The notes beneath the pieces are model-generated. The model ran no database searches. It saw only the letters and a program-made list of their open reading frames with translations, and was not told where the DNA came from. Shown in pieces: positions 20,414 to 64,000 of a DNA stretch of 64,000 nt; within the stretch, counting starts at the first letter, position 1; every line of letters begins with the position of its first letter. Made by a program: the position numbers and the translations under genes. Origin of the DNA: Selaginella moellendorffii (lineage: Eukaryota; Plantae; Lycopodiophyta); the NCBI RefSeq assembly GCF_000143415.4, contig NW_003314390.1, positions 148,973-212,972 on the forward strand, given 5' to 3'.

Positions 20414-22512
20414 GGGCCTGCTACTTCAAGAGTGGAGCCCCGTGGATAAGAATGCCTGGTGTACAACTTAGCACACACGAAAACGACAACGAAGCTAGCG
20501 AGGTAAGTTCTTGTTATAGATCAGTACGCTTTGATTCCGGTTCTCGTTTTCTCTTTGGGGCCCTTTCGCAGAGCTCGTGGATGACTTGTGGAAGAAGAAG
20601 AAGATGCCAAATGCAAAGAGGGCCATACTCTCTCGCTCGCCAGGGCCCAAAGATGGATTCTTCGGGACTTTCCATACATGGAGGTATGGTTGCTTTCTCT
20701 TTCTCTTTTTTTGTTTTCTTTTTCTCCTGTCTGTTCTACTGTTCACTGTGAGCAGCAGTGATTGACGCTTGCTACTCGTAGATGGCCAAACGCCGCGCTA
20801 GGCACGAAGCTCCAAATCGATCCTTTGGAGTGACGCGGCGAATCAATCAATATTTTTTTCTTTCCAGTGGCATGAGCTTTCTCGATTGACTGGACGTGTA
20901 GATGAGCAGTGCCCGACCACTGTGAGCAATGCATTGTCTATGATACTGCACGAGCAGTGGCAGGCAGCGTGGTCTGCTCAGCTGTTTAGCTCCACGACGT
21001 TTACTACGAAAGAGATTCGCGGCTGCGAGTGACGCAAAGCTGGTACTATTACTTTTCTCTCGTCTTTGTTAGCGGCAACCACGTTTTTGGTGCTGGTTTC
21101 CTTCTGACGCACTTGGTTTTTTCAAATGTTTTCCCAGATGCTCGTCTCTCTCCTCGATAGCTACGACGAGTCATTTGTTTTGTTTCCCGAAGGCGGTGCC
21201 TGCGACTAAAACAAATCGATCAGCGTCACGAACAGACCTCCAGGACCGAGGCGAGCGAAGCAACAAGTTGGCGGCCATCGCAATCAGATCCTGGAGCACG
21301 GATGATTTGGCCCCTGACGCGGACGATTGACGAGCTGAGGTGGTGCAGTATATATTGTATTTGTGGAAAGATAAAGAGGTACGTGGTTTTGCTTTCCTCT
21401 CTGCTTCTTTCGCCATAGCCTGGGAAAGCAGACAAAGTGGTGTCTCTCGCTTGGCAGGGAAGAGGGTCCTTTGTTTGCTGCTGACGCTTCCACATGAATC
21501 AAATATCGTCAGCACAGTGCGAACTCCACATGGCAAAGGTGCAGCCGCAGCAATCCTTGCAGCTTTATTCCAATGACTCCCATCGAGACTTCAGAAGAAA
21601 AAAAACCAGTCAATTTCCTCGAGAGCAGGCTAAGCTCCAAGGTACCTTTTGTTTTCTCGCATGGTTTATAGATCGATCGCTCTCTTCCCCCATGGTTTAT
21701 AGATCGATCGCTCTCTTTACAAGTGGTGGCTTTGATTCCACATCCAGATCGAGGGCGATTGCCATCGGAAAACAATGCCCTGGCGGAGATTTTTTCCATG
21801 GATAATCGATCAAATGATATAGAATTTAGAGGCACCGATGGAGCGATCGGGCGATATCTACAGCGAGCGATCGATGGAGCTGGAGAGCGTCTCATCGTCG
21901 CCAGTGAAAATAATGGCACCTAACACGGGCTCATGGGTTCCTTTCGTGGCGGCCATTCGTAGCATGTGAACGCTACGAGGGCAAACTCAAATGCGTGACG
22001 TTATTCCTGCGAATATGCGCTTTGACCCTTGGGTTGGAGGGAATCGAACCGGCAGTTGTGCTGTTAACCGGGGTTAGGGTCCCTTTCCAACGCTGCTACG
22101 GTGCTACAGTGCGCGGTTGCCCCTTTTTATAACGCGGGCACCAAAAGCATTCCAAGAAGAAGAGAGAGCGTTCTTGACGGAGGCGGCGTAGGCGACGGCA
22201 GCAGCGTCTTGGCGCAAGGTTTGATTCTTTGGTTTCTCTCATCGGCGCCGGCGCGCGATCTTAGATCGCCGCCTCGCAATCGGCGAATTCGCCTCTTTTC
22301 TCTCTGTTGCATGCGCCGATTCATCGATTGATCGCTGGTTTCGTGGCTCCTGTGCTGCGCAGGCTTGGATTCGTGCGATATTTCGTCCTGGGGAAAGGCG
22401 AGGATCCGGTTTTCTTCACATTCGAGTAGGAAATTTTTTGGCGTGGTTTGGATTGGAATGGGACTCATCCCTTGTTCTTGTGGTGTGCTTCTTCTTCTTC
22501 CAGGCGGATTGA

Positions 22513-22521
22513 ATGTTTTAA
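22513..22521 (+). promoter_or_regulatory. SAMDC 'tiny' uORF (Met-Phe-stop) overlapping the small uORF start
   Basis: ATG TTT TAA whose last A is the A of the next ATG (TAATG), just after a 5'UTR intron acceptor at 22503; the canonical plant SAMDC leader layout. Confidence 0.9.
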
Positions 22522-22738
22522 TGGCGTCGACGCGTGATTCTAGTAAATCGAAACGCGACTCTGTCCAATACGAGTCTCCTCTCGGCTACAAGATTGAGGA
22601 CATCAGGCCTGACGGTGATATTGAAAAGTTCCGCTGCGCTGCCTACTCAAACGTAAGCTCCTTTGTTTTCTCTGCGAGAAATGCGTCGCGAGCTAATTCG
22701 TCCCTTCTTCTTTGCAGTTCGTCCGAAAACCATCCTGA
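22521..22738 (+). CDS. SAMDC 'small' uORF conserved leader peptide, 50 aa, intron 22653-22717
   Basis: MASTRDSSKSKRDSVQYESPLGYKIEDIRPDGDIEKFRCAAYSN|FVRKPS matches the plant consensus YEAPLGYxIEDVRPNGGIxKFxSAAYSN|CxxKPS. Confidence 0.95.
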
Positions 22739-22960
22739 TACCCCCCAGAAAGAAGAGCCAGTAGAGTAGGCTAGGGCCTTCCCCTCGTCAAATCCTTTGC
22801 TTGGAGTCTCCTTTACCTCTTGGAGCTGGTCTGCGGCATGCTGCACGGTGGCAGATCAGCTCCCTGCTCTCGGGAGCAGCATTCTTCCCGCTAGCTAGCT
22901 AGCTCTTTAGCCGGTCTCTCCTCTCTTTTTTTTCCCCTCCGTCTCCTCTCACAAGCCAAG

Positions 22961-25423
22961 ATGGGTGTCTCTTTCATTCCCGCTGATGAAGTCATGGAGC
23001 CTGTTGTTGCCAGTCCTGGGTTTGAGGGGTTTGAGAAGAGGCTTGAGGTGGAATTCTGGGATCCTCTTGGTTTTGCCGATCCGAGTGGTCTGAGAGCAAT
23101 CCCCCGCAATGAGATTGACACTATGCTGTCAGCGGCCGAGTGCACTATTGTCTCTGCTTTGAGCAACAGTCACTTTGATTCCTACGTGCTGTCTGAGTCG
23201 AGCCTCTTCGTCTATCCTTCCAAAATCGTCATCAAAACCTGTGGAACCACGCAGCTCTTGAAGGCCATCCCCCTGCTTCTCAAGTCGGCCTCGTTTATCT
23301 CCCTGGAAGCCTGCCGCTGCAAGTATAGCCGAGGAACTTTCATCTTTCCCAGTGCCCAGCCTTCGCCTTATGGAAACTTTAACGAGGAGGTGGTGATCCT
23401 GGAGAAGTACTTTGGTCACCTTGGAAACGGAGGCAAGGCTTGCGTCATGAGTGACGCCTCTAAGATGCACAACTGGCACGTTTATGTTGCTGCGTCGGAA
23501 GTGGCCCCCTTGAGCTCTGAGACATATACAATGGAGATGTGCATGACGCAGCTTGATCGCTCTTCGGCAGCTCTCTTCTACAAGTCGCCGTTCTACCGGT
23601 CAGCTGCTGACATGACTCTCCTGTCCGGCATCCGGAACCTCCTGCCTCACTCGGAGATATGCGACTTTGCCTTTGATCCCTGCGGCTACTCAATGAACAG
23701 CGTCGAAGGCAACGCCCACTCGACCATACACATAACTCCGGAGGATGGTTTCAGCTACGCAAGTTTCGAGACCATGGGTTACAGCCCGTGCATGCTCGAC
23801 TTGGGAAGCTTGGTGGACAGAGTGCTCGGCTGTTTCAAACCAGCAGTTTTCAGCATCTCACTCTCGACGGCTGGACTCTGCCACTCACGCGACGCTGGGT
23901 CCTGGGGGGTGCCGGTTTGTCCACGAGGCTACGTGTGCAGTGGGACTACTCGCCATGAAATGCCCGGGGGGAGCTTCGTGGTGTACCACACTTATACGAG
24001 GATCTTAGGTGGCGACTCGACAGTGATGCCGCTTGCCCTGTTCCCGGCACTGGAGAAGGTGGCGAGCAATGGTTACAAGAGCAAGAACAGCGAAGCATCT
24101 TTGAAGCCGTTTCTGTACGGTGTGCAGCCCTTACGTGAAAGTGGTGGGGCGGAGGTCATCGGTCCTACTGCCAGGGACATGGATTCATTCATCAGGAAGA
24201 AGATCCAGTCCACGGGCCGAGAGGATGCGTTCTATGTTCTTGACTTGGCAACTGTTACTAGGCTGTGGAAGATTTGGAAGTCGGCCATGCCGAGAGTTAA
24301 CCCGTTCTACGCGGTCAAGTGCAACCCCGACCCGCAGCTCCTGTCCATGCTGGCGGCACTGGGAGCCGGTTTCGACGTCGCGAGCAAGGCAGAGCTGGAA
24401 GCTGTGACACAACTCGGGGTGGCGCCACGAAACATTATATTTGCGAATCCCTGCAAGCTTCCTTCGCATATCACTGAAGCTGCTAAGGCGGGGGTGGTGT
24501 ACACGACGTTTGATTCCGAGGGAGAGCTCTACAAGCTTAAGAAGTACCATCCACAGGCGGAGGTTCTCCTGAGGTTCCGTTCCGACGACACCGGTGCTCG
24601 CTGCCCGCTGGGCGTCAAGTATGGTGCCGAGTGGGACGAGTGCTATCATCTGCTGGAGGTGGCCAAGACGCTGGGCATCAAAGTCGCAGGTGTGGCCTTC
24701 CACGTCGGGAGCGGTGCCTCGGACGTGAATGCCTTTGCGGAGGGCATCAAAGCCGCGAGGAAGCTGTTCGACATGGCCGAGAGCTTGGGTCTCCCGAGGA
24801 TGACAATGCTGGACATCGGTGGCGGGTTCGTGTCGGATGGAGGAGCCGGCGTCAAGTTCGCGGCCGCGGCGTACGAGATTGGCAACGCGCTGGAGGAGCA
24901 CTTCCCGCTGGAGACGATGGCGGACGTGAGGATCATCGGCGAGCCGGGCAGGTTCTTCGCGGAGGAGGCCTTCAGCCTGGCGGCGCTCGTGTTTGGCTGC
25001 CGGGTCCGGAGGCGCGAGGAAGGCAACAAGACGGTGGTTGAGTACTGGATCAACGATGGCATCTACGGCTCCATGAATTGCTTGCTGTACGACCACGCAA
25101 CGCTCTCGGTACGGGCGCTTCCAGTGGCGAGCAGTGGCGGTGGCAGCAGCAGCGGCAGTGATTGCGAAAGCTCGTCCGAGGATGAGGAGGACGATGCGCC
25201 GCTGCTGGACGTGGAGCTCCATCCCTCCATCATCTTTGGGCCGACTTGCGATGGACTGGACACGGTGCTGAGCGATGTGTGGCTTCCGCGGCTCCAGTGT
25301 GGGGACTGGCTCGTGTTCCCTCGCATGGGGGCTTACACCAAGAGCGCTGGATCCAGCTTCAATGGCTTCGCGGTTCCAGACGCTACGTTCTACGTTCACT
25401 GTGGAGCAGCGCCAGAGATGTGA
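22961..25423 (+). CDS. SAMDC-ODC: Bifunctional S-adenosylmethionine decarboxylase / ornithine decarboxylase fusion, 820 aa, intronless
   Basis: N-half: GFEGFEKRLE, YVLSE|SSLF, KTCGTT, PCGYSMN, TIHITPEDGFSYASFE. C-half: PFYAVKCNP, FDVAS, IIFANPCK, FHVGSG, DIGGGF, EPGRF, DGIYGSMNCLLYDH, FGPTCDGLD, MGAYT, FNGF. No stop between the halves. Confidence 0.95.
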   Translation: MGVSFIPADEVMEPVVASPGFEGFEKRLEVEFWDPLGFADPSGLRAIPRNEIDTMLSAAECTIVSALSNSHFDSYVLSESSLFVYPSKIVIKTCGTTQLLKAIPLLLKSASFISLEACRCKYSRGTFIFPSAQPSPYGNFNEEVVILEKYFGHLGNGGKACVMSDASKMHNWHVYVAASEVAPLSSETYTMEMCMTQLDRSSAALFYKSPFYRSAADMTLLSGIRNLLPHSEICDFAFDPCGYSMNSVEGNAHSTIHITPEDGFSYASFETMGYSPCMLDLGSLVDRVLGCFKPAVFSISLSTAGLCHSRDAGSWGVPVCPRGYVCSGTTRHEMPGGSFVVYHTYTRILGGDSTVMPLALFPALEKVASNGYKSKNSEASLKPFLYGVQPLRESGGAEVIGPTARDMDSFIRKKIQSTGREDAFYVLDLATVTRLWKIWKSAMPRVNPFYAVKCNPDPQLLSMLAALGAGFDVASKAELEAVTQLGVAPRNIIFANPCKLPSHITEAAKAGVVYTTFDSEGELYKLKKYHPQAEVLLRFRSDDTGARCPLGVKYGAEWDECYHLLEVAKTLGIKVAGVAFHVGSGASDVNAFAEGIKAARKLFDMAESLGLPRMTMLDIGGGFVSDGGAGVKFAAAAYEIGNALEEHFPLETMADVRIIGEPGRFFAEEAFSLAALVFGCRVRRREEGNKTVVEYWINDGIYGSMNCLLYDHATLSVRALPVASSGGGSSSGSDCESSSEDEEDDAPLLDVELHPSIIFGPTCDGLDTVLSDVWLPRLQCGDWLVFPRMGAYTKSAGSSFNGFAVPDATFYVHCGAAPEM

Positions 25424-25658
25424 TCGTTCGTCCAGTTTTTCTTGTGTGTTTCGTTTTTCCGGGGAGCGTTTGATCGGTTTTGAGGCGCTCCTCGCGTTTT
25501 CGTTTCTTTTCCTTGTTTGCTTCTTTCTTTGAAAAATAAAATTTGTAGTTTAGGATATCCGTTTGCTGCCACGTCAGAAGATTGACAGCCACGTCAGAAG
25601 TGAAGATGATGACCAGGAACGTCGTTGACCAGATGAGTCAGCCCTAATATTTGAAAGG

Positions 25659-27338
25659 TCAAACGACTCCAGCCGCGACTGAGACATACGACGGAGGATC
25701 TTGGGGCTTGAGCGCCAGTAGCTCTTTTGCTGCTTGTTCCGCAAGGTCTCGGTTGCTGTAACGTTTGCATGCCGCGAGCAGCGAAGCCCACTCCACGTCG
25801 TTTGGAAGGAATGGCATGGTTTGGATGAGATCCATGGCGTCGTCGAGCTTTCCGGCCCGTCCCAGCAGATCGACCAAGCAGCAAAAGTGCTCCCTCAGCG
25901 GCTCCACCTCGTGTTCCGATTGCATCGCCAGGAAATGGTGGCGGGCGTCGTCCACGCTTCCCTTGTGGGTGCACGCCACGAGAATGGCCGCGAAGGAGAC
26001 CGCGTTGGGTCTCACCCCGGTCTGCATCATCTCCCGGAAGAGATGGCCGGCCACGTCGCTGAATTCGCTGCTGTGGGCGAGCGCTCCCACCATCGCGTTC
26101 CACGACACGAGATTCCTCTCGGGCATTTGCTCGAACGTGAGCTTGGCGTCGCTCGTGGCTCCGTTTCGAGCGTAGCCAGCGAGGAGGGTGTTCCAGGAGA
26201 CTGTGCTCCACTCGGGCATCCGATCGAACGCGAGCTTGGAATCCAAGACCCGTCCCGCCAGAGCGTAGGCTCCCACCAGCGTCGTCCATGTCACGACACT
26301 CTTGGGCTCGGAAACTCTATCAAACAGTGCCTTTGCTTGCGAGAGTTTTCCACTCACGGCACACGCCTGAATCATCGCGTTCCACGAGCAGATGTTCTTG
26401 TCGGGAATGGAGTCGAAGGTGGCTTTGGCTCGATCGTAGTCTCCTGCATTTGCATACACCGCCAGCAGCGTCGTCCACGACACAACGCTCTTTTCCGGGA
26501 TGGATTCGAACAAGATTCTCACTTCGTCGTGGGCTTCCGCGTCCGTGCATGCCTGCAGCATCGCATTCCACGACACCACGCTTCTGCAGGGCATTCTCTC
26601 AAACAGTGCTTTCGAGAGATCCAAATCTCCGGTTGCGGCACTCGCTGTGAGCATGGCGTTCCAGCACACAGAATCCCTTGAAGGCATTTCAACCAGACAA
26701 TTCCAAGCATCGCCCATCTTGCCGTTTTGTGCATAGCCAGTCAACATAGCCGTCCATGAAACAACATTCTTCTCAGGCATACTGTCAAAAATAGCTTTTG
26801 CCGCCTGCAAATGCCCTTTTCCGGCAAATGCAGTAACAATGATCGTCGACGACACTGCACACCACCTTGGCATTCTATAGTACACTAAATTTGCATGAAA
26901 GATTTCATCATTCTGTGTGAAACCTCGTATTAGTGCGTTCCACGACACGTTGTCTCGCTTTTCCAGGCCCCTAAAGAGCTGCTCTGCCTTGTAACTTTGC
27001 CCACCTTGGGCATATGCTGTTATCATCGCGTTTGAGGCCACCACGCTGCGATCCGGCATTGTGTCGTAAACCTCCTTGGCCTTGTCCATGTCGCCGTTGC
27101 TTGTGTAGGCACCGAGCATGATACTCCACGAGAAATCGTTCTTCGGATTGATGGCATCGAACACCTGCCTTGCCTCGCTTGGGCTCCCACACTTGCCATA
27201 CATTTGCACCAGGAGATTTGCGAGAAAGCGATTGAGGCATTGGCGGCTCTGGATTCGATCGTGAACACGCCGCAACTCGTCCAGGTTCTTGATGTTCTTG
27301 AGAATCCCTGCAAAGAATGCCTGCCCTGAGGTTCCCAT
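25659..27338 (-). CDS. PLS-class pentatricopeptide repeat protein (short-repeat-rich, E-type C-terminus)
   Basis: LVQMYGKCGS, many 31-aa FxxMPxxxVVSWNAML repeats, EHFCCLVDLLGRAGKL, WASLLAAC; intronless, 559 aa. Confidence 0.93.
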   Translation of the reverse strand: MGTSGQAFFAGILKNIKNLDELRRVHDRIQSRQCLNRFLANLLVQMYGKCGSPSEARQVFDAINPKNDFSWSIMLGAYTSNGDMDKAKEVYDTMPDRSVVASNAMITAYAQGGQSYKAEQLFRGLEKRDNVSWNALIRGFTQNDEIFHANLVYYRMPRWCAVSSTIIVTAFAGKGHLQAAKAIFDSMPEKNVVSWTAMLTGYAQNGKMGDAWNCLVEMPSRDSVCWNAMLTASAATGDLDLSKALFERMPCRSVVSWNAMLQACTDAEAHDEVRILFESIPEKSVVSWTTLLAVYANAGDYDRAKATFDSIPDKNICSWNAMIQACAVSGKLSQAKALFDRVSEPKSVVTWTTLVGAYALAGRVLDSKLAFDRMPEWSTVSWNTLLAGYARNGATSDAKLTFEQMPERNLVSWNAMVGALAHSSEFSDVAGHLFREMMQTGVRPNAVSFAAILVACTHKGSVDDARHHFLAMQSEHEVEPLREHFCCLVDLLGRAGKLDDAMDLIQTMPFLPNDVEWASLLAACKRYSNRDLAEQAAKELLALKPQDPPSYVSVAAGVV

Positions 27339-27996: not shown

Positions 27997-30900
27997 TGAT
28001 GGAAAGAATGAACAAGAAAATTCTTTTGTGGGCATTCCTCTCATGGATTCCTACTGCTAATCCTAGTTGCGTGCTCCTGGCATCCTGTTACCTTGATTCC
28101 AACCGCTCCAACACTCCCCCTCGATCTGATAGTCTTTCTCAGATCGCAATTCACCAGCTCCCCCTAGAAACAAAAGGACAAGTTGATGTTGCAAAAGTTG
28201 AATTGCAATCATTGTCTTTATCAAAAGATCTACTACCATGTTGGCTGTAGAAATGTATTTAAGTTTGATCTCTCCTTGTTCCACTGTTCTTGAATGAAGT
28301 AATGGAACATCTCAAAATGCTTGTTCCTCTTGTGGTGTATTGGATTTATGATGGATTGAAGACATGCTATGTTGTCGTTGTATACATTCATCAGTGCTTG
28401 CATTTTGAATCCTATATCTCACAGCAAACAGTAAATCCACAACGCTTCCTTTACTGCTTCTGTCACCACATTGTACTCGGCTTCACATGCTACCATTCGT
28501 TGTTTGCAATTGTGCCATGACACAACAATATTGGAGAATTTAAATACATACCCAGTTGTTGATCTGTGATCATCAAGATCCCGAGCTAAATTAGCATCTA
28601 CCATTCCATATGGAACTAACATCTATGCTCCAATTTCTCCTCTATCATACCTTTAAACTTGAGATGGAGTGATAAGGTCTATGTGACGTTGAAAATATGT
28701 TCCACCGCATATTAACGTCTCCTCCCCAAGTTTTGCATGAATTGGCATACATAAGAGACCACTACTGCCATATGTTATATCCAGATGATTTGCTGTTGCG
28801 AGGTACATCAATGCTCTAAGCACATTTTGATATGGTAATTGCTTCATCTCCTTCTCCCCTTCACAACATGGTTCATTAACTCTGGAAAGCTTCTAAAATT
28901 GTAGTGTGAGGTTGAAGTTATACATGTCATGAAAAATTTGCCATATTCTTTGACAAGGTTAGAAATATACTTGTGTTGGTGAATCCTCCACCCTGTCAAA
29001 ATTTCAAGACCAAGAGAAAAGGGAATTTCATCATTTTAAGTAGTTTGATGAGTCACTCTTTTAGCCATTGTAAATTCCATGCCTTCCTGATGATGATGAG
29101 ATCATCTATATAGACACAAACAAGTATGATTGATAATTTGAACACAATACTAAAGGTTCTAATTAGCTTTTGCACAGAAAATCCAAGAGTTGGGAAGAAT
29201 TTGTTTAAAGTGTTGTACCATATTTTTGGTGAATTGTTTAAATCCATAAATCGATCGCTGAAGTTTACAAATAAAATGTTCTTTTCTATGTACTGTAAAA
29301 CCAGGAGGCTAGTGTATATAAATTGGCTGTTCCAATTCTTTGTTCAGAAAATCATTTTTGACATCCTTTTATAAGATCCAAATGACTATAGCAATGATTA
29401 GACAAATTGAAACCATTTTAACTACAAGGGAGAAAATGTCGTTATAATCAATCCCAACTCACTATTTGTAACCTTTTGCCACTTTGTAGCAATTGATCTC
29501 ACCTAACTCTTAGCTTTTTTTTTATACCCCATTATGGATGCCTCTTTTAGAACTCCTTGTGATGCCACCAAGGTCTAGGAATTATTTTCTAGTTGAGCAT
29601 TGTATTATATTTCTATCACTAGTTTCTAGTGAAAACACTATACTCCCGAAAGTGCTTCTTTAGGTTCTTAAGTAACTTATGCAACTTAGGCATAATACTT
29701 TAAAATGTTGTTTGTTGGTTTCCATGAATGAGAAAATCTCATAGGAAGAGCTGCAGCTGTAGTATCCTATGCTATTATTGTCTTTGTAATACTAACATCC
29801 CCCCTATTAAAATTATTGAGAAGATCACCTTGTATAGAGTTCTCATAATAATGTTCCTTTCGAATGAGATCCTTTGGAAATGTCATTTGATCCTCTAGTG
29901 GTGGTAGCGGAACTTTTAAAGGTGATTTAACAGGTAGTGGATACAGGTAATTGTTTGGATACACTTGTTGTAGTCACCTCTTGATTACATTTTTAGAACC
30001 AGATTTAAATAATATTTGTCACTTTTCCCTAGCTAACTAATGAAATAGAATATGCTGAACTATTTCTAGAAAGAAAATAGTTTGTTAAAAAGACACTCTT
30101 TTCTAGCTGAAGATCCATATATGATATAACCAAGCATTATACAATTTATTGCGTCTTTCTACATTTAATATATATGAAAATCCTATATAGCTATGTAAGT
30201 ATATAAGAGAAGGTTTACTATCTATCCAAATTTCATATAGTGTTTTCTCTGATGTTTTCTCTGGTTCATTCTATATGTGTATTATGGTATTCACAGCTTT
30301 GACTTAAAAGAAAATTGGACATTCATAGCTTTGAGCATTTCTCTTACTACATCAATAATGGTAAGCATTCATCTCTCCATAATCCATTTTGGCCATGATT
30401 ATATAGCATAGAGATTTGAAGTGATATACTTTGTGATGTAAGGATTGTTGGAACTTTACAAAAAAAAGATCATATCCTCCATCAACTTTGATTTATTGAT
30501 ATAACTTATAGATTTTGAAGAGCATCAGATTTTTGCCTCAAATAGTGAACAGTTGTGAAATGATTGAGATCATCCACGATTAGTAGAAAATATAGAGTAT
30601 ATGTTAAAGATTTTATCAGTGATAGTCCCCAAATATCAATATGAACTAGATGTAAAACAGTTTTACCTTGAGTGGAAGTTTTTTTTTGTAGTGGCTTTCT
30701 TCATTTTTGCTCATAAATAGCTTTCACACATTTTAAAGTTTGCATTCTATAAATCTAATACCCCTTTAAGCCAATTGAGGAGTTTTTTTTCACCCATCTA
30801 AAGCTTGTATGTCCTAATTGAAGATGCCACAACTATAATATTGAACCATTAGTAATAGAAATAGAATTTATACTTGGGAGTGTCAAAAAAAGAAATAAAT

Positions 30901-32120
30901 AAAGTCCATTTTTAACCATAGCCTGAGCAATTTGTGTATGATGAAAAGTGAAATCTGTTGTTGTGCAATGAAAAAATATGTAGATTCCTTATTTTCTAAG
31001 CTTAGAAACTGATATAAGATGTTTGGCTAGTTTCAAGACATATAAAAATTTAGAAATTTCAAGTTGAAAAGAAGGAAAAATAACTGTCCTAAAAGCTATT
31101 ATTTGCAAAGCTTCCTCAATCATTATATTTACAGATACAGTGAATGTCCTAAAACTTATCTTCTGAAACAACACTTTATTCATATGATGTGTCATACCAC
31201 TATCTACCAGTTTATATTTTAACATTTGCCTAACTCATCATCTTCCTCAATTATTGTTACATTTTCTATGAACCCTTTGCTTTTGGGATCATTTTGGCTT
31301 AAACAATCAATAATAAAATATCCAAATCTATAACATTTATTACAATGAACATTCTAATACTTCAAACATGCCTAATGCACCAAATTCCATTCACTTCTTA
31401 TACCTTGCCATTTGCTTGTTGTTCTACCAATCACTTGAGCAACCATTGCAACAGTATTTTCCTCTTATTTGAAATCACTAGTACCATCCTTTTTTTGAAA
31501 AATGTCATTTAAGCTTGTGTAATGATGGATATTAGCAATCACTTGATCGAATTCTAGTCTAAGACTATTCATCTAAAGCTCAATCTTCCTTCTAGTACTT
31601 CTCATTCAAGCCAAGAATCATAAGAGCCCTAATCATATATAAGAATGTTCATTACATATTCTGCAGCTTGTTGCCAGGCATCATCATTCACTCTATGTAG
31701 TTTTGTGCTTTTTCTTGTGGACCTTGTTTACAATTCACTATCTACCTAAAAATACTTATCTTAGTAGCCCATAACTATTTGTAATAGGAATTATTGTGGC
31801 ACTTGCGAAGCTTTAGCCATGGTTTATGAATTCTTAACCTAAACACATTCTATCAATATGATATTAGCATGTTCAGCTTTGAGAACTTTGCCTCCATAAT
31901 TAAGAACCATTTGTCATAAAAAAGGAGAGGCTCTCTTTCCTTATCTCTATCTAAAGTTATTACCCACTACTTAAAAATGATGAAGAAATGATTACTAGCT
32001 ACCTAGCTTAACAGACGTCTCATGTCACAAATCTCTAGAAAAGAAAAAACCTAGAATGAACAAAATATTCTCTAATACTATAATAGAAAGAATGAACAAG
32101 AAATTCTATTATGTGGAACA
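27997..32120 (-). mobile_element. Heavily decayed Ty1/copia retrotransposon
   Basis: PPT GAGGGGGAG before the 3' LTR (28113-27997); RNase H-region motifs DLDDHRSTTGYVF and EAEY; RT motifs VYIDDLII and PYQNVLRALMYLA; protease VDSGMTHHM; degenerate PBS at 32069-32080 next to a truncated 5' LTR (32081-32120). Confidence 0.9.
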
Positions 32121-34990
32121 TGTAGTCCTTAAATTTTAGATGTTTTTTTTTTCTCTATTGAATATTTTACATTTCTATTTCTATTTCTTTATAATTTGAA
32201 TTTATAGATATAAGAATAGGTATATTAATTGGGGTTTAGACCCCTCTAGGCGATTATAAACTACCACAAGAATTTGAAATTCCTATAAAACTATTAACAA
32301 AGTTGTTGACAATTATAATGAAATAAAACCCAAAGCCATGGGATAACCATTAGTTAACTACGGAATCTTGATGCACCAATTGCAACTCCATGTGTAACTA
32401 CCAAATGCTTAAATTAACCATAAAGCCATAACTTTGAATCAAACCAAGGGATTTCAAGAATTACTATATGTAAGTAACCAAAGGGAACGACTTGAGAGAC
32501 GATATGTTGGGGTTCAAATATAGAGGGAAAGGGCCCATGAATAAAAGTGCACCCCCTTTTCTAATCAGTTAAGGGTCTTAGGATACTTGGGGTTAAGCGT
32601 CCTTGGGTTTGAATAGTACTGGGCTGGGTGACACTATAGTCCATGAAATGCCATTGCAGCATCTTCCTTTTAAGTCTGCTTGCTAATAACCTTTTAAGTC
32701 TGCTTGCTAATAATCTTTTGAAACAACTGTTAATTTAAACTCATGACTATAATCTTTTGAAACAACTGTTAATTTAAACTCATGACTATAAGTAAAACTT
32801 ACTTTTGCATCTTCCCTTCGGTTAACATCCAAGACTCATATTAATTTAGATTTATAACTATTGTCCTTATCCAACATTGCATATAGGAGCTCGAACTCAC
32901 ACCGTTTGTCCTCCACATCCTCTTTATCCCTTGAAGAAAAAAAAGTTTTGAAGCATAGGTTTCGTTTAAACTCGTTATATTTGTCTTCACTCTACTATTT
33001 ATATTCGGCTTCACTTCACTATCGCATTCATTTAACTTTATTATGTCAGGGCCAAATGTTTCATTCAAACTTGTTATACTCATCCTCACTCCATAATTTA
33101 TGTCATTCATCCTCACCCCACTATTATATTCACTCGTCCTCACTTTATCATCGGGGCCAAACTTCTGGCTGTCCCCTCTACCCTTTCAAAGAAAAAAATG
33201 TTTGAAGCGTTGGGGTAAAGAGGAGAAAGTAAAAAAAAATTAAGAAAGAAATAGTATGGAAGAAGAAAAAATGGATAAAGAAGTATTAAAAAAAGAATTT
33301 TTAGTAGCTATCAATGTTAAAATACTTTGGCCATCATAATATAAATAAAATATTCATACCGTTCAACCTCCTCAACACATAACTCAATATCTGAGATGGG
33401 AAAATCAATGAAAATGTTCACACTCTCAAGAAAATGTATAAACTTTTTAGTAATAATGGTAAAACAAAGACTTTCAACAATACTCATAAGTGGGGATATA
33501 TATTTAATATAAAACTTTAACCAAAGTGACTCAACCTTTGGAATAAAAGAATACTTAACACCAAAATTGATTAAAGACTTTGCCAATGAAATAAAAATAA
33601 AATTTTCAACTTCCTACGCATGCTCAACATTGGGTCATAAATGACTAATATGCTATGAAAAGGAAACACTGTAGATGAGGAAGAAACACTAAGAACGTGA
33701 GAAGGTGGTTTAAGCCGAAAAGTTAAAAAAAGTTGGAAAAAAGCAAAAGGTAAATAAAAAAGATCAAATGGCAAATTGAAAGATTGACACTTACTCTACA
33801 AAATCTCTACTTCATTTCCAAAGATATCTTAAGTTTGTCAAAATAATTTGGAATCCACTCAAAGTCACACATATTGTCTTCCCATAAACTCAATTTTTAA
33901 ACATTCTTTAAGAACTAAATTGCATTATTTACAACTTGCCAATTAATGTCATAATCAATACTCCACATTAACAGGAGATGGTAGAACACGGAGAATAAGA
34001 CAAGCCATATAATCATGTTCTATAGAAGTTGGAAATGACAACACACTAAAGATGGGTGTAGCACCAATATAGTCACACCCCACAACACCCAAAGTTCGAT
34101 CTAATGGAGTAGCATTAATAGCCTTAGATAACATACTCCTTAATTGATGATAGTATGGCATAGTAGAAAAAGAAAATGCAATGAAGATTAGAAGATAAAG
34201 TAAATTGAGGCATAGCAATATTTAGAATTCTAGATTTTGCAAAAAGCTAATACAAATTTAGATTTAAAAGAGAATGAAGAAATAAAAGTAAAAAGTATAA
34301 TCTCAAGCACACACTACCAAAAAGTTTTGCCTTTAAGAGACAAATTAAGTATATTAATTGGGGTTTAAACCTCTACTTATATACAAAAATGGATAGACTA
34401 GATTTAATCCCAAATGGATTATCTATATGTTATAATACTATAATTAATGTGTTATTTAGTCAGAGTAATATATACACACATAAATATATGTATTTACAAA
34501 CCTTACAAATTTAATTTTGTTTTCCATATATTTATTAATTTTTTCTTTAATAAAATACGAAATTATTTTCTTACATAACCACACATGTTCCATTACTTTA
34601 ATTTTCCTCTTCCTCTTCTTGCCACAAGTCCCTTCAACTTCATCTTCCGCCTCAATCTCAAAGGAAATTGTGCAATCACTACCTATGCCCATACTCTGAT
34701 TATAGAAGAAAGGAACTACCTTTGTCATCTTATCTTTAGAAACCCATGATTTGGCTCATCAAAGTATCCACCTTGAAATTTCTTTGATGTTCTTACTCAT
34801 CCATCATGGCTGCAAAAGTTGCCACAACTCAGACTAGATTGCCATGTCTTTGTCATCTTCTAAATTGCATCTAGTGCACCACTCTCATCTTCTAGATCTT
34901 TGACAAAGTTAGCCTTGCCTCAAGCTAACGCCATTATGCAAAGAATTTTTTGACTCAACAAAATGTTGCTGATCATAACTTCTGCCTTAT
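32121..34990. mobile_element. AT-rich decayed repeat or transposon inserted into the copia 5' LTR; internal tandem repeats
   Basis: Starts TGT where the copia LTR breaks; tandem duplications at 32668-32790 and 32950-33150; 32510-32600 resembles 63150-63240. Right boundary approximate. Confidence 0.45.
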
Positions 34991-35051
34991 CATTATAAGG
35001 GCGTGAAAGAACCAATTTTATTTGCCTTACGCTTTAAACCTAAAATTTTAG

Positions 35052-35840
35052 AGAAAGGGATGGATGTTCAATCAAGGTGGAAAAACGCCGCAAGACTTGC
35101 TGCCAAGGTACAGTTATTTTGTGTGATCCAGCCTAAAGTTCTGTGGTTTTAGATTGGTAAAGGTTTGTCCAAATGTCCCGAAGCTATGATTCTTTCTGAG
35201 GACAACTGGCTTGAAGCTGTAAGATTCTGCTTTATTACTTAAGAAAGTTATGCTTCTCTTTTTCTACAAGCAGCATCGCAGAGGACACGATTTATATCGA
35301 AAGTTCACTACATGGCGATGGAGCAAAACAAAGGAGCCCTTTTTCCACTGGTACACTCTCTACACACACAGTTAATCCTGTCGTTCCGAACGACTTTTCT
35401 TTAACTAGGCTTGATGAAGGCGAAGGAAAGCATTGCACGATCTTCCTTACACATAAAGTTCATTATCTCAGTCCAGTAAGTGTGCTGTTATGTTCAATAT
35501 TGAGCTCTCTTGTAAACGCACAGAAGGAAAGGGAGAGATATGAAGTGAACGTCCAAGATGGTCACATGATCTTTAAAATCGATGGAAGGAAAGTTGATAC
35601 ACAATGGACTGAGTGGATGTTTGTGATGGACACTGACGACAGGATATATATTAGAGAGGTATCATACATATCTTTTGATGGGCAATTTTCTTCAATTATC
35701 TAGAAAGAGCATGGAAAGTTTCACCATTCTAGTTTTGCTGATCGATCCAAATTCCAGTGTTTAGACAATTTAAGTGGACATTATCGTCCAGAATCGGTTA
35801 ACTCCTTCCACAAGGAACTAAAGAAAAGGGGTTGCATGTT
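35052..35840 (+). CDS. IQM-family (IQ-motif calmodulin-binding) like gene, divergent and possibly a pseudogene
   Basis: Spliced short exons give SRWKNAARLAAK-IGKGLSK..NWLEA..HRRGHDL..PFFHWLDEGEGK..YLSPKERERYEV..WMFVMD..GKFHHSSF..SGHYRP; the segment between HSSF and SGHY is shortened. Confidence 0.75.
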
Positions 35841-35869
35841 AAGCAAATGTCGTGTAAGAAATGACTGTT

Positions 35870-36130
35870 ATTATTGAATAATTATGAGATTGATCTTTGC
35901 ACGGATTCTTCAAGAACGTCAAAGACTTGGACGAGCTGCGGCATGTTGAGAGCTCCTCCGACTTGAAATTTTGCCCTTTGAGACATGGTACCGTATGGCC
36001 TTCTCCATGTTGCTGTTTTTCGTGCAGGCACCAAGCATGATATTCCAGGACAAATCGTTGATCGATGGCATGCCTTGCCTCGCTTGGGCTCCATACATTT
36101 GCACCAGGAGATTTGCGAGGTTTCCGTGAC
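35870..36130. pseudogene. Rearranged fragment of a PLS-PPR gene paralogous to 25659-27338
   Basis: FKNVKDLDELRHV on the + strand adjoins ANLLVQMY..LSWNIMLGACTKNSNMEKA on the - strand. Confidence 0.75.
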
Positions 36131-61205: not shown

Positions 61206-62754
61206 CCTAGCATCTGTTTCTACTTTTGAACTTTAGGCAAAAACAAAGAAAATGGCTTCTTTGTCAGTCAAGAGTCAAGAGGTAAAAGCTATGTTAGCCT
61301 TCCAATGGTATCTGAATCCTTCTATTTCTTTCTTTTCTATGTAGCTTTATATTACAGAAACCTCACACAACTCACGCCAGGAGTGTAGAGCAGTACAAGG
61401 CTAGAAGCAGGAGAAAGTTTGAAAGTATTAAACTTTAGTAGTCATGTTTCTTTCTCATTTAGCTTTATTTGCTTTATTTCACAGGAACTAGCATACACAC
61501 CATGAAGTGTACTAGGAGTGAAGGTGCAGTACACAAGGCCAGGAGCGCATGCACAACAGCAAGCAGAGGAAGTGTAAGTAATAATTTATCAAATTTTACA
61601 TTTATGTCTTGAGTTTAAACTTCATAATTATGTTAGATGTGCCATATAAAAGGAAGACTACTTTCCCTAAACGATTTGAATATTGTGCAACTGAAGAAAA
61701 AAAAAAGAAAAAAGAAGGCATAATGCCAAAGCTTTTAATGTTCCATAAAAAAACTATCAGTTACCATGTTATAGATGCCATAAATAATCTGCTTCATTCT
61801 CTTTCCATTCTTATTTCTTATAAAAGACTTTCTATTTTTATTTGTTACATAGGGGCAAGCAATTGTGATGACATGTATGCAAGCATCAAAAGGTTTTTTT
61901 TGTCAATATCCTAAAGAGTGTGATTGGCCAAGTAGCACTCAACTCATTGATCAATTAGGCCTAGCAAGAATCCATTTTCATGAAAATGGTGAAATAAAGC
62001 TGAGTTGGAATAACAATGGAACAATGTTGGAATAATACAAGCACATAACAACAAATAAACAAGCAATTTCCAAGTTTTGTAGAATTGTTATAAATGTTAC
62101 ATTCATTAAACAAGGTCAAAATTTATAACAAAACTACAATATTAAAACATTATAACCTCTACACATTAGATTTGCAACATTGCGGTCTCTTATGTTAATG
62201 AGGGCTAGGTATGTTATATTTATCTTACTTTTTTCTCCGTTCTTTCCTTCTTGGATTTTTGTATATCAACCTTGGGCTAGATCACACAATAAGAGAGACT
62301 TGCTAGATCTTCTTAGTGCACTCTTGGACCTTAACACCACGGATCTGGACAAGGAATAACATAAACTTTGATGAATGACCTTAGAATTCATTTTGCTCCA
62401 TTTGCTCCATAGTGATTCTATTGATGAGTACATTATAAAGAGATAAACTATTGTAGAACTTATTATTCTTCTATAACTCACAGCAAGGCATATGGATAAA
62501 AGAAGACTTTGAAAAGGCTATTGAAGAAATCAAATGACATAGAATGAGTGAAAGGGCTATATATAAAAACAATACAACATTATAAGGTTATCACTGTCAA
62601 TTTGAAGAGCAGATGTTTGCAAAAACATAACAAAAAAGACCAAAAATTGTGTTCATATTTGAAAAAGAAGAATTCCTATAGAAATTACTTGAATTTTCCT
62701 TTAGAAGTTACTTAAAACTCATCAAGAAATCAAATATCCTATGAAGAAGGCAGA

Positions 62755-63090
62755 TGCATGGAAGTAATAATTTTCTTTGCCTCTTGCAAATAAATAAATT
62801 TGTTTTTATATGAAACTACTAAAAGATCATGTAAAAAGGACTATTAAAGCACCACCTAAAGATCATATTCAAACTATAAATATTGGAAGTGAGTTATGCA
62901 AAGTTCATGAGCAAGTTTGTTGTAGATACATTCTACAAGAATATTATGAAGAATGCAAATGCATGGAAGTAATAGTTTTTTTTTGCCTTTTGCAAATAAA
63001 TAAATTTGTTTTTATATTAAACTACTAAAAGATCATGTAAAAAGGATTGTTAAAGTACTACCTAAAGATAAAGTTCATGAGCAAGTTTGT
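62755..63090. repeat. Tandem duplication (about 200-bp period) within AT-rich decayed repeat DNA
   Basis: ATGCATGGAAGTAATA...CACCTAAAGAT at about 62755 recurs at about 62959. Confidence 0.85.
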
Positions 63091-63555
63091 TGTGGATTGG
63101 GAGTATACACATATAAACAACCAAAGAAAACAATTTAAAATAATTCATAAGGGTTTAAATTTAGAGGGAAAAAGCTCATAAAAAAAAATGCACCCTTTTT
63201 TTTAATCAATTAAGAATTTTGGGATATTAAGGGCAAAAAGTCCAAATTCAATAGTTTACAATACACTAAATCCTCCTATGGCAAATGTTAGCTTTACAAT
63301 GTTCAAAAATAGTCTATACAATCAATTTATTCCACACTCAGTGAACTAATATGTAAACAAAGCCAAATAAAGTTCTATACTATTTTGACATACCAATAGT
63401 CTAACACAAAGGATATAATTCCCATGAAACTTAGTACTATATACTAAAATGGCATAAAGCTTAGTTTTATATACTAAAAGTTTGTTATCTACACGCTAGA
63501 GATGGTTAAAAAAGAAATGCACTCTTTTCTTCATAAAAGTAAGTAATCAATTGAA

Positions 63556-63858
63556 GTCAGCTGAAAGGCTTGGATAATCTTTTGAAATTTCATTGTGATG
63601 GGAATAGATAATTGCAATTATTGATTTTCAATGAGGAATTCCTAGTAAGCACAAGTCATCAGCTCGTGCTGACTACATCCCTACCTTTTGTACACACTGC
63701 TTGTCGTTTCTATCAATTGAATGATCTGGTGAAGTGTTCAAATTGTAACAATGTTAACAATTTACCGCTGGCAATGCTATGAGAAGTTTATTAAACCTTA
63801 TCAAGGAAGGAGAAAGCATAACAAAGTTTCCATAGGTAAACCTACAAAAAGATCATTA
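63556..63858 (+). pseudogene. Decayed 3' fragment of nuclear 18S rRNA, probably followed by ITS1-derived sequence
   Basis: GAGGAATTCCTAGTAAGC, TTTGTACACAC, ATTGAATG, TAACAAAGTTTCCATAGGTAAACCTAC..GATCATTA match universal SSU motifs, with many C>T/G>A changes. Confidence 0.92.
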
Positions 63859-64000
63859 ACACACATCTATAAATTGTAAACCACGAACATTATATTGTCC
63901 CCCAAGGGGCCATGCTCGAAGGCATGGCTAGCCAGGACATTCAATTTGGCTGCATACACTTGTGTAAGTGACTTTAGGCTTAAGTAATATTAGGTTGGAA

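Follow-up and report, generated by a model that had tools for sequence, protein, structure and literature searches.

We analyzed a 64,000-nucleotide (nt) stretch of the Selaginella moellendorffii genome (NCBI RefSeq assembly GCF_000143415.4, contig NW_003314390.1, positions 148,973 to 212,972 of the forward strand), which we call the window; all positions are counted from its first letter, and the gene under study lies on the plus strand. This gene encodes S-adenosylmethionine decarboxylase (SAMDC) and ornithine decarboxylase (ODC) in a single open reading frame (ORF), and its leader carries two overlapping upstream ORFs (uORFs), one tiny and one small, that resemble the pair known from plant SAMDC mRNAs. 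A preliminary description of this DNA, made from the letters alone, had noticed the pair and proposed that it places ODC under polyamine feedback. We report here the structure of the gene and its transcripts, the relatives of the fused gene across green plants, and how far the proposal holds.

The main ORF is intronless and extends from 22961 to 25423 (2,463 nt), encoding a protein of 820 amino acids (aa). An exact match to this protein is recorded on scaffold GL377694.1 of assembly GCA_000143415.2, which is also the source of the SAMDC proteins that NCBI names for S. moellendorffii. A SAMDC domain occupies aa 20 to 345 (23018 to 23995; Pfam PF01536, SAM_decarbox, E = 2.9e-103), and an ODC domain occupies aa 428 to 790 (24242 to 25330; PF02784, E = 5e-73, and PF00278, E = 5e-16). 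The SAMDC part aligns with potato SAMDC (1mhm, E = 3e-83) and retains the proenzyme cleavage motif LSES/SLFVY, with the alpha chain beginning at SLFVY. The ODC part aligns with Trypanosoma brucei ODC (1f3t, E = 2.7e-103) and retains the motifs PFYAVKCN, which holds the pyridoxal phosphate (PLP) lysine, HVGSG, DIGGGF, EPGR, and GPTCDGLD. By these motifs, both enzyme halves look catalytically competent. With both domains in one ORF, on one mRNA, and with the catalytic motifs intact, the product belongs among the bifunctional SAMDC-ODC proteins.

We aligned contigs from four public S. moellendorffii runs, each from a different study, to positions 21500 to 25900. The runs are catalogued as "RNA?", which is a guess, and we took the contigs as transcripts because they contain spliced GT..AG joints. 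Being assembled contigs, they show presence and splicing only, and their depths are no basis for ranking isoforms. A single 3,045-nt contig of run X1 spans 22152 to 22216, 22361 to 22425, 22504 to 22652, and 22718 to 25483, and it contains the uORFs, the SAMDC part, and the ODC part. This spliced contig bears out the earlier claim that one mRNA carries the uORF pair and both enzymes. The first joint of the contig (22216 to 22361) reads GT..AG once the cut is shifted by +2. Leader exon 1 (22152 to 22218), whose 5′ end is a minimum set by the start of the longest contig, and leader exon 2 (22363 to 22425) both lack an AUG. They are separated by leader intron 1 (22219 to 22362; 144 nt, GT..AG), whose joint is present in X1 and X3. 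Leader intron 2 (22426 to 22503; 78 nt, GT..AG), with its joint in X1 and X14, ends 9 nt 5′ of the tiny uORF. Neither of these two introns appears in the preliminary description. The spliced 5′ leader is at least 522 nt long, and contigs of X1 and X9 span the junction between the SAMDC and ODC domains. A separate low-depth X14 contig lies at 21742 to 21969 and may be explained by a minor upstream start or by an unrelated transcript.

The tiny uORF, ATG TTT TAA (Met-Phe-stop), lies at 22513 to 22521, exactly as first read. The last A of its stop codon, at 22521, is also the first base of the small uORF ATG (22521 to 22523), giving a 1-nt overlap. Exon 1 of the small uORF (22521 to 22652) has 44 codons and ends in TAC TCA AAC at 22652, with GTAAGC coming next. 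The intron inside the small uORF, the third of the leader (22653 to 22717; 65 nt, GT..AG, phase 0), follows directly after the ..YSN codon, and the joint from 22652 to 22718 that removes it is present in the runs of all four studies. A mini-exon (22718 to 22738) encodes FVRKPS and the stop codon TGA (22736 to 22738). After splicing, the small uORF therefore has 50 codons and the C-terminal end ...YSN/FVRKPS-stop; its coordinates, length, and intron had all been given correctly in the preliminary description. Exon 1 matches the Pfam family PF08132 (AdoMetDC_leader, "S-adenosyl-l-methionine decarboxylase leader peptide") at 62.4 bits (E = 3.5e-17) against a curated cutoff of 25 bits, a match far beyond chance. 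One single nucleotide polymorphism (SNP), 22550 G>T, falls within the small uORF, and it is synonymous when the codon is read by eye. A public protein collection lists an 82-aa "gene" with PF08132 at 22521 to 22769, an entry that corresponds to the small uORF translated straight on into its unspliced intron, and comparable PF08132 gene calls lie upstream of SAMDC-ODC fusions in Adiantum and Klebsormidium.

The 3,045-nt contig begins at 22152, and the first AUG of its leader is that of the tiny uORF, the second that of the small uORF. The tiny and small AUGs both have T at −3; at +4 the tiny AUG, whose context is weak, has T, and the small AUG has G. The main AUG is in a strong context, with A at −3 and G at +4. 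The spliced leader also contains a third uORF of 18 codons (22838 to 22894), whose AUG has G at −3 and which ends 66 nt before the main AUG.

We searched with the 820-aa protein and recovered hundreds of proteins of ~780 to 1,000 aa with the same three Pfam domains. These fusions occur in liverworts (Marchantia, Riccia, and Calypogeia), in ferns (Adiantum and Ceratopteris), in Zygnematophyceae (Mesotaenium, Spirogloea, and Closterium), in Klebsormidium, Chlorokybus, and Mesostigma, and in many chlorophytes (Trebouxia, Micractinium, Bryopsis, Tetraselmis, Cymbomonas, and others). In some of the fusion gene models PF08132 stands at the N terminus, where the leader peptide has been merged into the model. 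Given these many orthologues of the same architecture, the unbroken 2,463-nt ORF, the contigs from independent studies, and the strength of the PF08132 match, we regard it as refuted that the gene is an artefact of assembly or gene modelling in which two neighbors were read as one, or that the leader ORF pair arose by chance; the probability of either is vanishingly small.

The regions upstream of the fused ORF were compared for Marchantia (L001), Adiantum, Klebsormidium, Closterium, and Trebouxia (L006), together with an orthologous transcript contig from Logan (L007). The small-uORF peptide is present just upstream of the fused ORF in all six (tblastn, E = 1e-16 to 3e-5). The 1-nt overlap between the tiny and small uORFs is present in four of them, reading ATGTTATAATGG in both Marchantia and L007, ATGACATAATGG in Adiantum, and ATGACCTTATAATGG in Closterium; it is not evident upstream of the Klebsormidium fusion or, in 2660 to 2940 of L006, upstream of the Trebouxia fusion. 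Retention of the cassette by fused orthologues, a point raised by the preliminary description, holds in all six for the small uORF with its intron position and in four of the six for the tiny uORF.

The small-uORF intron is conserved along with the peptide. In all five genomic orthologues the peptide alignment breaks at the ..YSN codon (YGD in Trebouxia), which is followed by a GT donor, and a short second exon, C-[VAL]-[RK]-[KA]-P-S-stop, is found in these five and in an unfused Selaginella paralogue (L009). The L007 mRNA carries the equivalent peptide end, already spliced. The mini-exon of the fused Selaginella gene has F where all the other small uORFs that we spliced have C. In Marchantia, Adiantum, and Closterium, too, the tiny uORF comes just after the end of an intron. 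Because the small-uORF intron has the same position from Trebouxia to ferns, it would date back to the divergence of chlorophytes and streptophytes.

The plant system of SAMDC control consists of a tiny uORF of 2 to 3 codons and a small uORF of 48 to 55 codons, overlapping by 1 nt in most land plants, and the small-uORF peptide has a penultimate proline at its C terminus (PMC2811004). The Selaginella pair fits this definition with its 2 and 50 codons, the shared A at 22521, and the penultimate proline of ...PS-stop, and it sits in the mature 5′ leader of a SAMDC-encoding mRNA (contig 22152 to 25483; PF01536). Taken alone, the cassette is a textbook example of its known family. The leader of Arabidopsis AdoMetDC1 (AtAMD1/SAMDC1; conserved-peptide uORF homology group 3; PF08132) likewise has a 2-codon tiny uORF that overlaps a small uORF of ~50 codons by one base. 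In both genes, moreover, the leader is long, an intron interrupts the small uORF near its 3′ end, the peptide has the core (Y-E-x-P-L-G-Y-x-I-E-D-[IV]-R-P-x-G) and the ...PS-stop end, and SAMDC is the first enzyme of the main ORF. The Selaginella gene differs in that its main ORF runs on into a full ODC, in its extra 18-codon uORF, and in the F for C in the mini-exon.

In the accepted model, translation at low polyamine levels begins at the tiny uORF and ends there immediately, after which the ribosomes reinitiate at the main ORF, whereas at high polyamine levels the tiny uORF is skipped more often and the small uORF is translated, its peptide then repressing downstream translation (PMC2811004). 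In Arabidopsis extracts, the AtAMD1 small uORF causes a spermidine-dependent stall at termination that is lost when the uORF is frameshifted (PMC7038982). Repression that depends on both polyamines and the peptide sequence is known only for angiosperm genes (PMC2811004, PMC7038982). The Selaginella peptide retains the conserved core and the ...PS-stop end, and from this homology we infer that the Selaginella leader would respond to polyamines and how strong its control would be. At low polyamine levels, scanning ribosomes would take the weak-context tiny AUG, stop after two codons, and reinitiate downstream. At high levels, the tiny AUG would be bypassed more often and initiation would shift to the overlapping small uORF, where the conserved nascent peptide would stall the ribosome at termination and so block access to the main AUG; the stalled small uORF may also destabilize the mRNA. 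Synthesis of SAMDC and of ODC would then be repressed together. Because both domains lie in one intronless ORF on the uORF-bearing mRNA, ODC should share any uORF control that acts on SAMDC. We are fairly confident in the overall reading that the spliced leader of a gene encoding SAMDC and ODC as one 820-aa polypeptide holds the canonical plant dual-uORF cassette for translational control of SAMDC, that the cassette would respond to polyamines as its homology to Arabidopsis predicts, and that the fused arrangement was inherited rather than newly made.

Several features of the leader and of the data weigh against this reading. The base at +4 is the sole difference between the contexts of the tiny and small AUGs, a slight one, although it runs the way the model would have it, with the tiny AUG the weaker. 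The third uORF, whose AUG is absent from the L007 mRNA, appears to be lineage specific and could dampen or alter reinitiation. An X3 contig takes the leader back to at least 21852 and joins exon 1 to exon 2 by splicing, and this longer leader would place six extra upstream AUGs before the tiny uORF. The transcription start, the proportions of the isoforms, and an ODC-only transcript are beyond the reach of assembled contigs. The third uORF and the longer leader isoform also favor a different account of the leader, in which the Selaginella cassette is constitutive or tuned to something else (thermospermine, stress, or nothing) and the third uORF and extended leaders dominate. The F in the last mini-exon points the same way, as does a second unfused paralogue (L010), which has no overlapping tiny uORF. 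We consider this account unlikely, since Arabidopsis-type sequences share both the peptide core that is relevant to stalling and the ...PS-stop end, the tiny and small uORFs still overlap by 1 nt, and the L007 mRNA has no upstream AUGs beyond the two canonical ones.

It is also conceivable that the cassette is real but that ODC escapes it through separate expression, whether by an internal promoter or start or by a transcript of its own, so that SAMDC alone is under uORF control. The linker between the domains (aa ~346 to 427) is poorly conserved, the ORF contains in-frame AUGs, and internal starts are compatible with the contig data. The ORF is nevertheless single, continuous, and intronless, contigs of both X1 and X9 cross the domain junction, and the fused architecture has been kept for hundreds of millions of years, which argues for a single polypeptide as the product. 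Separate expression of ODC is very unlikely, and joint control of the two enzymes is the reading we carry forward. The preliminary description went further and called the leader an antizyme-free homeostat for the whole pathway. This is an overstatement, because land plants also produce putrescine via arginine decarboxylase, and that route escapes the leader.

S. moellendorffii also has two unfused SAMDC genes, L009 (GL377606.1) and L010 (GL377623.1), and both have the small uORF with its conserved intron. The tiny uORF overlap is present in L009 (ATGTTGTGATGG) and absent in L010 (2620 to 3010), so the tiny uORF varies even among paralogues of one genome. No credible ODC remnant was found at either unfused locus by tblastn and three-frame blastp. 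We built a maximum likelihood tree of 39 SAMDC domains, rooted on the chlorophyte fusions. All unfused land-plant SAMDCs fall inside the streptophyte clade, the early branches of that clade are all fused (Mesostigma, Chlorokybus, Klebsormidium, Mesotaenium, and Spirogloea), and fused and unfused genes are interleaved in bryophytes, lycophytes, and ferns. An approximately unbiased (AU) test, for a group that was chosen with the tree in view and in which some "unfused" rows may be truncated gene models, rejected a single clade of all unfused genes (delta lnL 114, p-AU 6e-27).

In an ODC tree rooted on insect ODCs, the fused domains of Selaginella, liverworts, and ferns grouped in a single clade with good support, and this clade was nested among the charophyte fusions. 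A separate old clade held the stand-alone ODCs of Sphagnum, Lycopodiaceae, and seed plants. Of the best 120 relatives of the ODC domain, none was a stand-alone ODC from S. moellendorffii, a result that is suggestive only.

The simplest reading of these trees is that a uORF-controlled SAMDC-ODC gene was ancestral in streptophytes. The unfused SAMDC genes, still uORF controlled, appear to have arisen, more than once, when fused genes lost their ODC half. Because the unfused land-plant SAMDCs nest within the fused ones, coupling to ODC would be the old state and the uncoupled seed plants the derived one. This ancestry is open to two objections: the rooting of the SAMDC tree depends on fused chlorophyte sequences, with unfused chlorophyte SAMDCs outside the sample, and the possibly truncated "unfused" rows enter the tree itself. 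The comparison of loci dates the fused gene, the small uORF, and the uORF intron at least to early streptophytes, and all three are also found in a chlorophyte.

These results bear on the timing and the cause of the fusion as first proposed. The preliminary description stated that the uORF switch "now also governs ODC". ODC does lie downstream on the same ORF, and by inference it shares the control, but on the simplest reading of the trees the word "now" runs backwards in time, and the fusion and the small uORF are found in a chlorophyte and in basal streptophytes. It had also offered the cassette as a plausible selective reason for the fusion, which gains no specific support from our data, the fusion being widespread. 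An innovation of the Selaginella lineage, selected because it brought ODC under existing SAMDC uORF feedback, is logically attractive, we know of no ODC antizyme in land plants, and the order of events at the origin of the fusion is beyond the resolution of the data. We nevertheless judge it quite unlikely: the fusion is not lineage specific, occurring with the small uORF and its intron in a chlorophyte and in basal streptophytes; the coupling is dispensable, since several lineages later lost it; and the tiny uORF is absent upstream of the Trebouxia fusion. Inheritance of the fused, uORF-controlled gene remains the reading that we favor. A more specific version is possible, although we advance it only tentatively and give it somewhat less than even weight. 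In this version the tiny/small uORF sensor arose on the green-lineage SAMDC-ODC gene, or very early came to control it, and did not arise on a SAMDC gene; in plants such as Selaginella one nascent-peptide sensor would set both rate-limiting decarboxylases without an antizyme, and the seed-plant SAMDC leader would be what remained after loss of the ODC half.

Other observations concern the gene and its surroundings. The ODC domain contains a low-complexity insert rich in Ser, Gly, and acidic residues (25100 to 25200) that has no counterpart in T. brucei ODC, and within it X14 has a 9-nt in-frame insertion (GTGGCAGCA) at 25139 to 25140. About 20 more SNPs are common to X3 and X14 and stand at about half depth in X3, consistent with a second haplotype. 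The SAMDC-ODC gene converges with a gene for a 559-aa PPR protein on the minus strand (25659 to 27338). From the 3′ end of ODC, X14 and X3 contigs extend to 25806 and to at least 25900, and a tail-to-tail 3′ overlap of the two genes may exist. The regions 28000 to 36000 and 62000 to 64000 are AT rich (GC content, 30 to 36%) compared with ~50% GC near the gene and may be repeat or transposon territory. An upstream tRNA gene near 22040, considered because of the string GGAATCGAACC, was rejected when ARAGORN found none. An Rfam scan of 21500 to 23100 gave nothing relevant, with only a subthreshold match to ssnA (E = 0.33).

The arrangement can be set beside other systems that couple or control these enzymes. 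The bifunctional AdoMetDC/ODC of Plasmodium falciparum has, like the Selaginella protein, an N-terminal SAMDC and a C-terminal ODC in one polypeptide; we know of no plant-type uORF cassette on that gene. The MAGDIS uORF of mammalian AMD1 also gives a polyamine- and peptide-dependent stall at uORF termination in a SAMDC leader (PMC2811004, PMC7038982), but its six-codon peptide is unrelated in sequence, it is a single uORF, and its origin is independent (PMC2811004). The ODC antizyme and the upstream conserved coding regions (uCC) of ODC are likewise forms of translation-based polyamine feedback on ODC (PMC2811004). The antizyme works through +1 frameshifting and ODC degradation and the uCC through non-AUG starts, neither of which is seen in the Selaginella gene; unlike with these systems, ODC in Selaginella would be controlled only through sharing the SAMDC mRNA and ORF. 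In a full-text literature search we found no paper describing the SAMDC-ODC fusion of the green lineage or the leader of the fused gene, although an account in a subscription journal is possible. The cassette ahead of a SAMDC-ODC gene, and the antiquity of the pairing, are visible in public databases.

The findings matter for annotation as well as for polyamine biology. Left unspliced, the small uORF is called by automatic gene callers as an 82-aa gene of its own, and in some models the leader peptide is joined to the enzyme. The idea of shared control can be put to a direct test in Marchantia, a transformable plant with this arrangement. How ODC is kept in check in plants, where no antizyme is known, is poorly understood. 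Should the Selaginella leader behave like its Arabidopsis counterpart, ODC and SAMDC would be regulated as one translational unit in non-seed plants and in many green algae. The phylogeny also suggests that the much-studied SAMDC uORF system of seed plants is the remnant of a bifunctional gene.

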